Both the position numbers and the translations under genes were made by a program. Below the pieces are notes generated by a model. It was not told the DNA's origin and ran no database searches. It worked only from the letters and a program-made list of their open reading frames with translations. A stretch of DNA of 64,000 bases. It comes from Dendrobates tinctorius. Its lineage: Eukaryota. This document shows positions 12,228 to 64,000 of this stretch, in pieces. The stretch is taken from assembly GCF_039654945.1 (NCBI RefSeq), contig NW_027361751.1, positions 8,184,001-8,248,000 of the forward strand. The letters run 5' to 3'. How positions within the stretch are numbered: position 1 is the stretch's first letter; the number at the start of each line of letters is the position of its first letter.

Positions 12228-13010
12228 CGCTGTCAAGGGTACCGGCCACCTCTGCAATTTATCGTGGGTCGCTGGTCTCCTAGGCAAGGACTATGGGCTT
12301 AGTTTAATACAGATTTTAGGGTAAAAATATCAAATACTGTCACTTCCAAACAAAAAACAGGTGTGAACAGGTGCAGGCTAAGAGTAGCCACCTCCATATA
12401 GAACTAACAAATAAAGTTGCACTCTGTAACGCTATAACATGCAAACATGAAATATGACATTGGAATTGCATTACTGCTCTAGAAAACAGGTTAGAACTAA
12501 GAATCTTGGTGCATATATTGGTCAATTCATGCGTGCCCAGCAGCCACGACAAGGTGATCCTCTATGCTGGGAACCTAAGCTAACATGAAATCTCTCCTGG
12601 GCTGCATAATTATATCGGAAGTACCTCGTAGGATTCTGCTGTGATTAAAACTACCAGAGGCTGATGTGTGGAGTGCTCGGTCAGAGACCCCGAGTATACA
12701 TATATCAAAGACTGACCATCATTTCCAAGCAGAAAACTGGTGTGAACAGGTGCGTACTAAGAGTAGCCATCTCTATATATAACTAACAAATAAAGCTGCA
12801 TTCTGTAACACTATAACATGCAAACATGAAATATATGAAATTGGAATTGCATTACTGCTCTAGAAAACAGGTTAAAGCAAAGATACTAAGTATTTCTAGT
12901 CTGTAGTATCTTTGCTTTAACCTATTTTCTAGAGCAGTAATGCAATTCCAATTTCAAATACTTCATGTTTGCATGTTATAGTGTTACAGAATGCAGCTTT
13001 ATTTGTTAGT
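12228..13010 (-). mobile_element. Non-coding fold-back element, Penelope-like architecture (partial tandem plus inverted arm)
   Basis: Direct repeat 12360-12492 / 12739-12873, inverted copy ~12905-13010, possible TACTGAT duplication at 12221-12227 / 13011-13017. Confidence 0.55.
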
Positions 13011-19637: not shown

Positions 19638-20190
19638 GTGAGTCGGTAATAAGTCACTTTTCATGTCATAATTGGGATAGAAGGTTGCTGTATACTGCAT
19701 CTTGAATATGACCTCAGATCATAGTCCATAAAGGGGTGGTCCAAACCTCATTTTGATTTTCATCCTAAATTTCTCTAGTTTTATTGTAATCCGTTTCCTT
19801 TTCTAATATGCCCACATTAAAAAGCCCCTACTTTTCCCTATTTATGTCTAAAATACATACGGAGAGTTGATAAAATAATGTCCCCAATCTTTCTACTGAT
19901 AACTTTAATGAGATGTATTTTATTTCAATTTATTTTCACTTGATGGCACCCGGGTTGTCATAACTACGGTAACTAGCAGAACAGGACATGCAATTAGTGT
20001 GCACGTTTGAGTGTCCCAGGTTTGCACTGGGGATTCTCAAATGGGACATCTTCAAGGGCCAGAGACTGGTCACTGCTGCAGCCCCTGGCCCTACCCTGAA
20101 ACCGCGTAGTCTCCAATCTCCGTTTCGGGGTCTGAGCTGGTCTCCTCTGTTGAGCATGTGTTGTTTAATTCTGACATATGCTCAATACAA

Positions 20191-21197
20191 AACCAATCCA
20201 AATAAGTTATACCTCAAATCCCAAAAAAAAATTTTTATTTTTTTTTATATAAATGATCCCTTCAAAATATTAAACCATAATACCAAAAGAGAAACAACGA
20301 AGGAACAAATAGATCCAACAATAATTTTATTAATACATAACACCTATTAAAAAGCATATCATAATAGCACAATAAGATATAGAATACATGGGGGGTGGTA
20401 AATACCTAACCCTAATCAATTACATATAGCTGTGACTAACTGAAAACTGTAAAAGGCCACACATCCCAAACCGTTAGGCAGTCATAAATATATATGGAAC
20501 AATGCTCCTACCATATATCACACAGCAGGAGCATCATCCCTACTCTGGACTAACAACAATTCTGTTGACACAACGATCAAAGCACTGGCTCACTATCTCA
20601 AAAGTGCATGTGTCAATAGATTAAAACATAATAAATGGCTATTTAATGTGGTCAAAGCCAATAAGTAATCAGTGTATAGCCCATTTACCTGCAGTCATGT
20701 TGCCGTCTGGTGAACTGGATATATGGCCTGTAACGCACCCCGACGCGCGTTTCACCGCCTCTGCAGTTTCATCAGGAGGTCCGGGTGCGTTACAGGCCAT
20801 ATACACTGATTACTTATTGGCTTTGACCACATTAAATAGCCATTTATTATGTTTTAATCTATTGACACATGCACTTTTGAGATAGTGAGCCAGTGCTTTG
20901 ATCGTTGTGTCAACAGAATTGTTGTTAGTCCAGAGTAGGGATGATGCTCCTGCTGTGTGATATGGTAGGAGCATTGTTCCATATATATTTATGACTGCCT
21001 AACGGTTTGGGATGTGTGGCCTTTTACAGTTTTCAGTTAGTCACAGCTATATGTAATTGATTAGGGTTAGGTATTTACCACCCCCCATGTATTCTATATC
21101 TTATTGTGCTATTATGATATGCTTTTTAATAGGTGTTTTGTATTAATAAAATTATTGTTGGATCTATTTGTTCCTTCGTTGTTTCTCTTTTGGTATT
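20191..21197. mobile_element. Non-autonomous Penelope-like / retrozyme-like fold-back retroelement in NSA2 intron 4
   Basis: ~420-bp near-perfect inverted arms (~20278-20740 vs 20783-21197), 15-bp TSD ATATGCTCAATACAA (20176-20190, 21198-21212), central hammerhead. Confidence 0.8.
20737..20780 (-). ncRNA. Minimal type I hammerhead ribozyme
   Basis: ACCTC-CTGATGA-A-ACTGC(AGAG)GCGGT-GAAA-CGCGCG-TC^GGGGT: intact core, 5-bp stems I and II, palindromic stem III. Confidence 0.85.
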
Positions 21198-21740
21198 ATA
21201 TGCTCAATACAAGCCCCCTTTTCACTGTGCAATATTCCTTTCAATGCACAGTGACAGTGCGCTCCCTCACCGGCACTGATGAGAAGTGATGAGCGGCAAG
21301 AGGGCACCCTATCAGTGCGCATTGTAAGGAGAAAACCTGGCGAGCAGAGATCAGCCCTGTTCCTGTAACAGACATCACTTTCATGGATGGTGCCAGTCTC
21401 TGCTCTTCCTGCTTGCCAGGCTATCTCCTTACAATGTTCACAGACCGTGCCCTCTCTTGCTGGCTCGTCACTTCTAATTGGAGCCAGTGAGGGAGTGCAC
21501 TGTAACTATTCACTGAGAAGAATATCATACAGTGACAAGGGAGCTTTTACTGAGCATATGTTAGTAATGACAGCCAAAGCATGCTCAGAGCAGGGACTAG
21601 CCCAGCCCCTGAAACATATGTCACTGATAACTCATTTCAGGTTGGGGGGAGAGGCTGCACAGTGACAGGAGCCTCTACCACACCCACCGATGACATCTCA
21701 ATTGGCCATTTATTTTAGCACTCCTCTAAGCTAAGCCTTA

Positions 21741-29720: not shown

Positions 29721-30758
29721 TCCTGCAGTGTTTTGGCCAACACGAACTCACTGATATAAAAAAAAAAAATACAATACTTGCCTCTCCCTGTTCCCCAGCT
29801 CCTACAGTCTCTGCAGCTTCAATGCCCGTCACAGTATGTTGTTCGATGAGGCAGAAGTGGAATGAAGGGAGAGGGAACATCATCTGATGCTCTTTCCGCC
29901 ATCATTGCTTTCAACTGTATTGGCTTCTCTGATGCTGATACAGTTGAATGTGAGGGGCTGGCACCGAGCCCGCCTGACTCACGGGCCCCATAGCGGCTGC
30001 CCGGTGTGCTGCTGTTAGTGGCACGCCACTGGCTGGGGGAGCTGGGGCCCTGGGCAAATGTGGATCTGCAAATTTTTTGATGACAGATAGTTCTAATTAC
30101 CATATATCACCAGCTTATTGCCACGAAAATCCAAAGGCCATGTCCCCGCACAGCATTCCACTAAAAGTTTTCTTTAGTAAAAAAAATCTGATGCGTGTAA
30201 CAGTTCAAGCACTGGCTGTGATTATATAAAAACATCTTTTTATCACATTTTCCCTATGGTTTTTATGGGGAGCCTGAAAAAATTAATGTTAAGCACAATT
30301 GCATTGGTCTCCAGGTTTTTGCTACCTCATCTGAGAGCAGCATAATATAGGAAAAGAGGCCCTGAAACCAATGATGTAACCCTTTATAACAGCTGCTGCA
30401 CTAGTAAACTATCCAGAGTTATAAGATGTAGTGGAGCTCCCTCACCCACACCACAGCTTTCTGTGTAGATTGTATGTTGACAGTGAGCTGCTAATCAGAA
30501 GAGGGGGTAGATCGGACCAGGGCTCATGTGCACTATGGTCCCAGCGGTGATAATCTCCTTGCGATAAAACCTTCATTGTATGGAAACATCAGCACACACA
30601 CACACACAGCCTGATATATCATTGAACTTTGTATTTCAGCCTCTATTTCCTGATGTCTTCAAATAACATGGCAAACAGGTTCCCTAAAACGCATGAAATA
30701 AAAGAAACTCTATTAAATCTACAAAAGGGGGAAAAAAAAAGCAACAAGAACCACAAGT

Positions 30759-31355
30759 ATCAAAACAACCATACCCTACACGGATACTAGGAATGTTTCA
30801 AGAAAAGGATTTTTTATAAAAATTTATTAGTCAACATTTAAAGTTTACATTTTATAGGTTCCTTTTTGAAGAAGGAACACCGAAACGCGCGTCAGGGGAT
30901 ACGTGGTAGGTCCCGAAACCGCAGCACAGGTACTTTGACATGTCATGCACATAAGGGTGGTGAACTTTTTTCGTGTAACAAGCCCTATACTATTTGGTCT
31001 CTGCTTCTGATGAGATTCAGTTAGCACATTGACACTTTATGGCAGGCTATGGTCAGGCGCCATGATGCACTGTTTGGAATGCATTGTATACATTGATGCT
31101 GCTTTTTATTAGTTACAAATTTGTGCAACTTTATGAGGAGTTTGAATGCTGATGAATACATGAATTTCATGTTCCACCCAGCACCGTATATATAATTGGT
31201 TTTGTGACCTGGCTGCTTGTTTTTTTATTCCCACCTGTTTTGGATTGATCTATGAGCACCTATATTATGTAAACTTTAAATGTTGACTAATTTATTTGTA
31301 TAAAAAAAACTTTTCTTGAAACATTCCTAGTATCCGTGTAGGGTATAGTTTTGAT
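30759..31355 (+). mobile_element. Second hammerhead-bearing non-coding fold-back element
   Basis: Inverted repeat ~30759-30850 vs ~31268-31355; hammerhead immediately inside the junction; T-rich body. Confidence 0.7.
30860..30899 (+). ncRNA. Minimal hammerhead ribozyme variant (UUGAAGA core)
   Basis: TCCTTT-TTGAAGA-A-GG(AACA)CC-GAAA-CGCGCG-TC^AGGGGA. Confidence 0.65.
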
Positions 31356-62566: not shown

Positions 62567-62730
62567 CTAGAATAAAGGCGGAATTAACAAGTCTGATTAA
62601 TTGATCATACAATGGCCATGCTGTATTTTCTGGAACCCACTTTCTGAAAGTGTATTTCCAAAATATGATATGGATACATACATTATCATTTATTTCCCTA
62701 AATTCAGAAATCAGGCCAATTCAGAAGTAG

Positions 62731-63145
62731 CAGAAACAAAAAACACAAATATCCTAAAATAAAAAATAAACTGCAAATAATGCATAAAAGTAATAATAAT
62801 AATAAGCGTATATTATGTGTGTATAACTCTAGTATTTAAAACCTTTCCACTTGTTCACATTCACGTCACTTGGCAAGTAGAAAGGTTTTAAATACTAGAG
62901 TTAGGACTGTCCCACAGGGGTTGCCTTGACGTGGCGGGATGGTTTGTACATTATTTTGATCAAAATTATGTTTACTAAATACCCTTATTATTATTATTAT
63001 TACTTTTATATGCATTATTTGCAGTTTATTTTTTATTTGTGTTTTTTGTTTCTGTATTCTCTGTGTAATGGTCATGTGTTAATATGCGCTTACATTGTGC
63101 ATACACATTACCTTACTTTCTCAGTTCAGACTCAAGTTTTTTATT
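62731..63145 (+). mobile_element. Non-coding fold-back retroelement without a hammerhead
   Basis: 14-bp TSD CAATTCAGAAGTAG (62717-62730, 63146-63159); left arm is an internally deleted inverse of the T-rich right arm. Confidence 0.7.
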
Positions 63146-64000
63146 CAATTCAGAAGTAGGCAAATTTACCATGCTTCATTCACTTGTCTTAAATTTTATG
63201 CTTGATTCATTTTTTTCCTCTTTGGTGTGTGCACACGCTGCGGATTCTGCTGCGGTTCCGCAGCGGATTTGGCCGCTGTGGGTCCGCAGCAGTTTTTGCT
63301 GCGATGTACAGTACCATTATTGCCTATGGGAAATTGTCAATTGTCATGTCAATTGTTTCTGCGGATTCCGCTGCGGTTTGCCATCTCCTCCACTGTGGAG
63401 ATGAAAAACCACAGGGCAAAACCGCAGAGCAATCCGCAGGTAAAACCGCAGGTCTTTTGACCTGCAGATTTACCTGCAGATTTTACAAAATCCGCAAGGC
63501 CAAATCTTCACCCCATTCCGCAGGGTGTGCACATAGCCTTATACAAACAGATGAGGGAATTTACTAATTAAATTGAAACAAATTGGGGCTGAATCCTGGC
63601 ATACATGCCATGTATCATATTTAGGCAGTGGTCAGACATGCAAGAAACTCGCACGTCAATACCCGGCACTGCCGCCGGCACACGGGATCAGAGCGTTCAG
63701 CTGCATAGAAATACATGCAGCTGAGTGCTCCGGTCCAAGTGCCGGTGGCAGTGCCGGGTAGAGATGAGCGACTTTGCCTTTTTTCGGGTCGAGTCGGGTT
63801 TCATGAAACCCGACTTTCTCAAAAGTCAGGTCGAACGAAATCGGCCGATTATCGTGAAAAGTCGAAGGCCGACTGAAACAGGAAACCTAATGCAAGTCAA
63901 TGGGGAAGCAAAGTCGGCACCTACAGTGCCCATTTGAATGGCAAAAAATCAATTTTTATTACTGAAGCTTGTCAACCTTAATTTACTTCATAATAATAGT

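Follow-up and report, generated by a model that had tools for sequence, protein, structure and literature searches.

The window analysed here is a 64 kb stretch (64,000 nucleotides) of a Dendrobates tinctorius contig. It contains two insertions, element A on the minus strand and element B on the plus strand, each with one copy of a short motif. The elements and their main parts are listed below, numbered along the window.

62731..63145, plus strand: element B insertion, 415 bp, with 14-bp target duplications CAATTCAGAAGTAG at 62717-62730 and 63146-63159
62731-62811 and 62979-63054, plus strand: inverted arms of element B, the left arm being an inverted copy of the right segment
62824-53 / 62874-903, plus strand: near-perfect 30-bp palindrome in element B, ending 3 nt before the predicted cleavage site
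62904-62945, plus strand: copy B of the motif, GGACTGTCCC / ACA / GGGG-TTG-CCTT / GACGTGGC / GGGATGGTTT
63055-63145, plus strand: unique 3' part of element B
12323..13010, minus strand: element A insertion, 688 bp, with 15-bp target duplications at 13025-13011 and 12322-12308 (13/15 matching)
13010-12323, minus strand: content of element A, namely an inverted arm (13010-12904), a partial tandem of a unit of ~380 bp and one predicted ribozyme
12574-12533, minus strand: copy A of the motif, GTTCCCAGCA / TA / GAGG-ATCA-CCTT / GTCGTGGC / TGCTGGGCAC

Open reading frames, poly(A) tails and hammerheads are absent from both elements. Penelope-type insertion anatomy is present in element A (partial tandem plus inverted arm) and partly present in element B. 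A preliminary description of this DNA had called the elements otherwise dissimilar. This does not hold throughout, as short collinear matches are shared downstream of the motif and the distance from the predicted cleavage site to the 3' end is nearly equal in the two elements (239 and 249 nt). The predicted ribozyme described below is internal to the insertion in the two window copies, at about 175 and 440 nt from the 5' end. Each insertion also covers DNA on the 5' side of the predicted cleavage site, which means that the RNAs serving as templates had not been cut at this ribozyme. The inverted segment starts at the 3' edge of a ribozyme copy (J4/2-P2') in both elements (62979-63054; 12889-12903), a position which suggests that cDNA synthesis may often end at the folded ribozyme before a strand switch. 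The palindrome at 62824-62903 folds at -39 kcal/mol (z -8.9) and could shield ribozyme folding from upstream sequence.

No autonomous partner is found within the window, and elements A and B match nothing else there. Fold-back insertions with a hammerhead-type core lie at 20176-21212 (CTGATGA...GAAACgcgcGTC on the minus strand, with 14-bp target duplications) and at 30690-31355 (GAAACGCGCGTC, whose upstream box is degenerate). Directly after element B, at 63236-63482, direct and inverted CTGCGGATTC-type repeats form a cluster that belongs to a different repeat.

When both copies are re-read, the motif letters match the earlier description. The degenerate 12-mer CCTTGWCGTGGC has two exact matches on both strands of the 64 kb, compared with none in 100 dinucleotide shuffles. 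A descriptor scan of the window allowing up to two core mismatches does not find a further credible copy. The outer stems differ in sequence between the copies and still pair, as had been reported, with 10/10 pairs in copy B and 9/10 in copy A. The copy B outer helix includes four G-U pairs and can therefore form only from the plus strand. The supposedly conserved TAG..TTAG leader is weak: in element B it coincides with the right arm of the 30-bp palindrome, and the copies of the family differ in it (62890, 62896). Nested minimum free energy folding of the motif is no better than that of shuffled sequences (z -1.1 and -1.4).

Parsed as RNA, the motif fits the nested double pseudoknot of HDV-like ribozymes point by point, and the earlier statement that it does not match the HDV consensus is wrong. 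The predicted parts of the two ribozymes are as follows.

62907..62986, plus strand: predicted HDV-like ribozyme of copy B, 80 nt, predicted cleavage between 62906 and 62907 (structural parse and generic descriptor)
62907..62913, plus strand: P1 5' strand CUGUCCC, pairing with 62936-62942 GGGAUGG (7 bp, two G-U), the inner 7 bp of the outer stem described earlier
62914-62915, plus strand: J1/2 (structural parse)
62916..62921, plus strand: P2 5' strand AGGGGU, pairing with 62981-62986 ACCCUU
62923-25 / 62933-35, plus strand: P3, GCC / GGC, enclosing L3
62926-32, plus strand: L3 UUGACGU, beginning at ribozyme nt 20
62943, plus strand: J1/4 nucleotide, pairing with L3 G62928 (P1.1); U in copy B, C in nearly all family reads
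62946..62974, plus strand: P4 hairpin, weak and AU-rich
62975..62980, plus strand: J4/2 CUAAAU, beginning with candidate catalytic C62975
62981..62986, plus strand: P2 3' strand ACCCUU (structural parse)
12499..12571, minus strand: predicted HDV-like ribozyme of copy A, 73 nt, predicted cleavage between 12572 and 12571 (parse and generic descriptor)
12565..12571, minus strand: P1 5' strand CCCAGCA, pairing with 12536-12542 UGCUGGG (7 Watson-Crick bp)
12564-63, minus strand: J1/2 (structural parse)
12556..12562, minus strand: P2 5' strand GAGGAUC, pairing with 12499-12505 GAUUCUU (5 Watson-Crick and 2 G-U pairs)
12557-12564 with 12480-12487, minus strand: alternative P2 with a second candidate 3' strand
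12555-53 / 12545-43, minus strand: P3, ACC / GGC, outer pair A x C, enclosing L3
12552-46, minus strand: L3 UUGUCGU, beginning at ribozyme nt 20
12534..12535, minus strand: J1/4 CA, forming a two-pair P1.1 of 12550/12535 (G-C) and 12551/12534 (U-A)
12533-12511, minus strand: P4 hairpin, weak
12510-12506, minus strand: J4/2 ACCAA, with C12509 or C12508 as candidate catalytic C

HDV-like ribozymes are described as nested double pseudoknots that cleave at the first P1 nucleotide and have a core made of L3 and J4/2 (PMC4908430). Their P1 is about 7 nt long and anneals to about 7 nt just downstream of L3/P3. P2 is 5 bp or longer, J1/4 has 0-2 nt and P4 varies widely; the family also has a catalytic C and an L3 with an important G (PMC3774820). 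The order of elements (P1, P2, P3-L3-P3', P1', P1.1, P4, J4/2, P2') is identical in all nine parsed representatives. This nested double-pseudoknot order is found in both window copies and in five further lineages, with P2 unassigned in one of them (L127). P1 is paired 7/7 in all seven lineages (two from the window and five from public contigs), and P1' comes directly after P3'. Where P2 is assigned, in six lineages, it is paired in every one and its strand sequences differ in each.

The P1 and P2 partners covary across lineages, in agreement with the earlier proposal of selection on RNA structure. P1 strands pair 7/7 with their own partners, compared with a mean of 5.0/7 with foreign partners, which are fully paired in 1/42 combinations. 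Foreign P2 partners are fully paired in 0/30. Each of P1 positions 2-7 has two to four pair types among the seven lineages. These pair counts come from a hand script run on the structural parse of the representatives. MAFFT core alignments misregister P1 because the length of J1/2 varies.

A generic HDV descriptor, which is independent of the core sequence of the motif, matches exactly two sites on both strands of the 64 kb, and these are copies A and B. Block-shuffled windows have a mean of 0.2 matches. The descriptor asks for an L3 of the form U-Y-N-N-C-G, 3 bp in P3, a P1 with all 7 bp paired, a single P1.1 pair and a P2 preceded by C. P3 (GCC/GGC, with the A x C outer pair in copy A) closes a 7-nt L3, UUGWCGU, that holds the conserved G in both window copies. 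Some R2 ribozymes tolerate a mismatch in P3 (PMC3774820). The G-to-A difference in P3 of copy A also occurs in several metagenome copies, at a CpG. P1.1 consists of G-C plus U-A in copy A and of G-C in the majority of the B family, and in copy B itself it is only G-U. Every lineage in which J4/2 is placed has a C at its start, for which a catalytic part is predicted.

Other measures of the fold are less distinctive. P2 by itself is statistically weak, with single-sequence shuffles giving p values from 0.01 to 0.86. A hairpin-anchored P2 test gives a combined p of 0.02, with P4 misplaced in three of the six lineages. The predicted ribozymes do not stand out by nested folding energy (z +0.5 and -0.5), and each copy has a weak P4. 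Each window copy also departs from the core, copy A by the A x C pair in P3 and copy B by the G-U pair in P1.1 (U instead of C), and each may be an inactive relic of an active master.

Taken with the fold, the covariation and the descriptor matches, both motif copies very probably represent the catalytic core of an HDV-like (delta-type) self-cleaving ribozyme, located on the sense strand of a non-coding retroelement. The fit to this fold also supports the earlier suggestion that the motif may take the self-cleaving role of the hammerhead. That neither element contains a hammerhead is borne out by the lack of an Rfam hammerhead match and by the absence of the CUGANGA / GAAA core letters from the motif. 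The candidate new ribozyme class is not upheld, since both copies fit a known fold.

The motif lies outside the narrow HDV and CPEB3 families. The HDV (RF00094) and CPEB3 (RF00622) covariance models do not match at E<=10, the first P1 pair is C-G in both copies and not a G-U wobble, and the P1.1 pair is reversed. At the gathering threshold, Rfam 15 has no match in the whole window. A comparison with Rfam had been proposed in the preliminary description. At E<=10, across four slices and ten loci that include slices of 111-206 nt, for which filtering is most lenient, neither copy matches a described family, and the only matches are generic hairpin and miRNA matches to the palindromes around the copies. 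The motif is thus an atypical sequence variant within the known HDV-like class, carried by two non-coding mobile-element copies.

Other identities were considered and rejected. Twister, pistol, hatchet, hairpin and hammerhead ribozymes have no Rfam match and do not fit on inspection by eye. A tRNA or tRNA-derived SINE head is rejected, as ARAGORN finds none. Resemblances to 5S rRNA, 7SL/Alu letters, telomerase CR4/5 P6.1 and kink-turns are unsupported by Rfam or by the second copy, as is a tRNA primer-binding site starting at TGGC. A pseudoknot of GWCGUGGC with the palindrome loop (CACGUC in element B) is not conserved in element A. A literature search for the literal sequence of the motif found nothing.

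The repeat family of copy B is very abundant in sequencing reads. The 100 nt around copy B are present in sequencing runs of at least four organisms, and copy B belongs to a repeat that is very abundant in three or more organisms, the organism of the window included. Logan contigs from three DNA-type runs and one RNA-type run were placed on 62650-63200 at 80% likeness. Their summed word depths reach hundreds of thousands over 62897-62972 and 63049-63124. Within the motif, the read contigs of the B family are near-uniform. Copy B differs from the family majority at 62917 (G, majority A), where the majority letter changes a P2 G-U pair into A-U, and at 62943 (T), where C makes up >99% of the depth in three runs. 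A further difference is the T at 62926, where the majority in organism A is G. The majority G at this first L3 position is found in the window's own organism (organism A), unlike in organisms C and D. Read depth rises near 62907 in two organisms, a rise that is confounded by clipping. Contigs of the one RNA-type run cross the predicted cleavage site.

Relatives of the motif also occur in metagenomes. A scan of metagenome contigs with a pattern made of the letters common to A and B matched at least 120 loci. About 44 of the matches listed are on low-GC, eukaryote-like contigs, and the rest are high-GC chance matches without the surrounding helix. The low-GC copies have no Rfam match. Among the matches listed, the low-GC set has the motif at the very start of a repeat. 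Across at least 26 independent insertions, the frequency of the commonest letter is 0.3-0.5 upstream and rises to 0.8-1.0 from P1 nucleotide 1. A structured RNA that begins exactly at the start of non-LTR retrotransposon copies is a signature of HDV-like ribozymes (PMC6765202; PMC3774820). The start of the LINE copies exactly at P1 nucleotide 1 is therefore a signature of HDV-like processing and points indirectly to cutting in the LINE relatives. The sequence UACUAA at J4/2 is common to copy B and the metagenome LINE ribozymes.

The motif-headed repeat on contig L058 runs into ORF1 (DUF4780) and then into ORF2 with an APE-type endonuclease and a reverse transcriptase; full-length LINE relatives additionally carry RNase H. 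In L058 (170-3963), L125 and L126, an HDV-like ribozyme at nucleotide 1 is followed by ORF1 (DUF4780) and ORF2 (APE, RT, RNase H). The stop-to-stop frame of ORF1 in this family opens already inside the ribozyme. Two of the lineages were obtained outside the pattern selection. L126 keeps the fold with an L3 of UUGUCGC, and L127 (44-88) has a compensated P3 (ACC/GGU), an L3 of UCGACGC and a two-pair P1.1. ORF2 of L127 is 39% identical, and its variant core lies about 700 nt upstream of ORF1. In the more distant LINE relatives L121-L124, the descriptor does not find a ribozyme in the 5' UTRs. Only a UUGUCGU remnant is seen in L121, at 597-603.

The proposed mechanism takes the fold and its covariation as observed, and catalysis, a role in RNA release in this genome and the mobilising reverse transcriptase as presumed. 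The element has no evident promoter and would be transcribed inside longer transcripts. The ribozyme would then fold with a 7-bp P1, a J1/2 of 2-3 nt, the P2 5' strand and a 3-bp P3 (GCC/GGC) with its 7-nt L3 (UUGWCGU). The fold would continue with the P1.1 C paired to the L3 G, a variable P4, J4/2, whose C is presumed to be catalytic, and the distal strand of P2. Cleavage would occur immediately 5' of P1 (62906|62907 in B; 12572|12571 in A) and would free an RNA of ~240-250 nt with the ribozyme at its start and the 3' end of the element at its end. A reverse transcriptase supplied in trans would use the 3' region of this RNA. The simplest candidate for the trans-acting enzyme is an APE-type LINE with the same ribozyme, on the model of L1Tc and NARTc. 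A more specific proposal, possible though less likely than not, is that A and B are a "delta-retrozyme". Such non-coding units, ~240-540 nt long and present at very high copy number, would carry an HDV-like ribozyme and not a hammerhead. Their insertions would follow the Penelope pattern, with a partial tandem, an inversion at the 5' end and an internal 3' start, and their RNA might pass through a self-cleaved, ligated circle.

Among the readings that compete with a self-cleaving ribozyme, one accepts the HDV-like fold and takes it mainly as a protein- or ribosome-binding module (RT recognition, IRES-like, or a roadblock to reverse transcription) in which self-cleavage is weak or lost. The uncleaved upstream sequence in both insertions fits this reading, as do the inverted arms that start at the 3' edge of a ribozyme copy in both, as if reverse transcription had halted there. 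The R2 protein binds a pseudoknot in its 5' ribozyme, and HDV-like ribozymes have been proposed as translation aids (PMC6765202). For a Penelope-like element, unprocessed RNA is the main in vitro insertion substrate (PMC11167929). This reading is unlikely, however. Related LINE copies begin exactly at the cleavage site, which demands cutting; an IRES role has no object in elements that are non-coding; and the conserved J4/2 C and L3 CG are features of a catalytic core.

The two remaining readings dispense with the HDV-like fold. In the model of the preliminary description, the motif is a plain hairpin, with two stems and an internal loop that is asymmetric and conserved, and stands for a new class of ribozyme or for a signal recognised by a Penelope RT/endonuclease. 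Such a hairpin fits the letters of both copies, and for copy B nested folding gives it as the minimum free energy structure. The lack of an Rfam match agrees with this model, as does the presence of hammerhead-bearing fold-back elements of similar insertion anatomy in the same window. Its outer stem stands as P1 plus a 3-bp extension, but its inner GGGG/CCTT stem competes with P2 and P3. In the majority family variants the inner stem is disrupted by 62926 T>G (organism A), and 62943 T>C disrupts the 3 bp by which the outer stem exceeds P1. These three additional pairs in the 10-bp stem of copy B are an extension of P1 by upstream bases, and such an extension is reported to disturb P1.1 in the L1Tc and R2 ribozymes (PMC3185411). 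The family-majority C at 62943 blocks the extension and creates P1.1, and the shared "mismatch" C after P1' in the hairpin is thereby the P1.1 partner of the L3 G in the HDV-like fold. The two-stem model also gives no account of the conserved C that follows the stem, the hairpin further downstream, the CUAA or the distal complementary strand. A Penelope signal is unsupported, since the nearest relatives of the motif are at the 5' end of APE-type LINEs and not of Penelope elements; no Penelope ORF is linked to copy A or copy B, and neither element has a hammerhead. The hairpin model is consequently very improbable. Least credible is a DNA-level signal or a coincidence, such as a TGACGTGG-type (CRE/UPRE-like) promoter site in two unrelated repeats. 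TGACGTGG is present in copy B, and the abundant part of the repeat has the motif close to its 5' end. Copy A has TGTCGTGG instead and is without the site, the helices are specific to one strand through their G-U pairs, two exact 12-mers are unexpected by chance, and compensatory changes in P1 and P2 occur across lineages.

The assignment to an HDV-like ribozyme explains the motif without any new ribozyme class and removes a false lead. It defines an atypical HDV-like branch that Rfam misses, with a C-G first pair, a reversed P1.1 and an L3 of UUGWCGU. This branch is common to a LINE lineage of environmental eukaryotes with APE, RT and RNase H and to very abundant non-coding repeats in this vertebrate and at least two related organisms. 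The covariance models of today miss the branch, so a descriptor or model built on it could bring numerous further copies to light. Should the carriers turn out to be retrozyme-like, they would be the first with such a life style built on a delta-type ribozyme, and they would bear on the source of the ribozymes of deltavirus-like agents. A delta-retrozyme, if real, would mean that HDV-type and hammerhead ribozymes can replace each other as modules within a single vertebrate mobilisation system, and would provide a genomic reservoir of delta-type ribozymes.

The HDV and CPEB3 ribozymes share with A and B the same nested double-pseudoknot helix order, a 7-bp P1 directly after P3', a 3-bp P3, a 7-nt L3 from about nt 20 with C-G at L3 positions 5-6, a J4/2 in which an initial C precedes A-rich letters, and a total length of 73-80 nt. 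In the mouse Cpeb3 ribozyme, GTTCACGTCGC is located 18 nt from the cleavage site (PMC10919898). The position of this sequence, taken from a primer in that paper, places the L3 UUCACGU of Cpeb3 at the same place as UUGWCGU in A and B. Unlike A and B, where the first P1 pair is C-G and P1.1 joins an L3 G with a J1/4 C (U in copy B itself), HDV and CPEB3 have a G-U wobble as the first P1 pair and a P1.1 of an L3 C with a J1/4 G. Their context is a viral genome or a conserved intron, whereas that of A and B is a repeat.

Penelope-like elements and animal non-LTR retrozymes (PMC4209133; a 2026 bioRxiv preprint) resemble A and B as non-coding units of a few hundred nucleotides without poly(A). A partial tandem preceded by an inverted copy and one small self-cleaving ribozyme per unit are further likenesses. 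Mobilisation of this class is by a GIY-YIG/RT protein. The anatomy of partial tandem plus inversion is described for Penelope-like elements (PMC11167929). Their ribozyme is a hammerhead and not HDV-like, unlike the one predicted in A and B, and according to a review hammerheads are a constant feature of the repeats of Penelope-like elements (PMC6765202). In the literature searched, no paper reports an HDV-like ribozyme in a carrier of retrozyme or Penelope type.

The 5' ribozymes of R2 and other LINEs (RTE, Baggins) free the element RNA from a co-transcript by cutting at the start of P1 (PMC3774820; PMC6765202). R2-type ribozymes are similar to those described here in that P1 varies by compensatory change, the P3/L3/P1.1 core is similar and P4 is highly variable (PMC3774820; PMC6765202). 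R2 is site-specific in rDNA, whereas A and B are dispersed. Their target duplications measure 14-15 bp, their 5' arms are inverted, and A also contains a partial tandem. L1TcRz of L1Tc from Trypanosoma cruzi is an HDV-like ribozyme in the first ~77 nt of a LINE with APE, RT and RNase H (PMC3185411; PMC3383444). It has a single-pair P1.1 and is sensitive to extension of P1 by upstream bases (PMC3185411). L1TcRz is at the 5' start of its element, in contrast to the ribozymes of A and B, which are internal to the insertion. It is common to L1Tc and to the short non-coding derivative NARTc (PMC3383444), to which A and B are likened by description.
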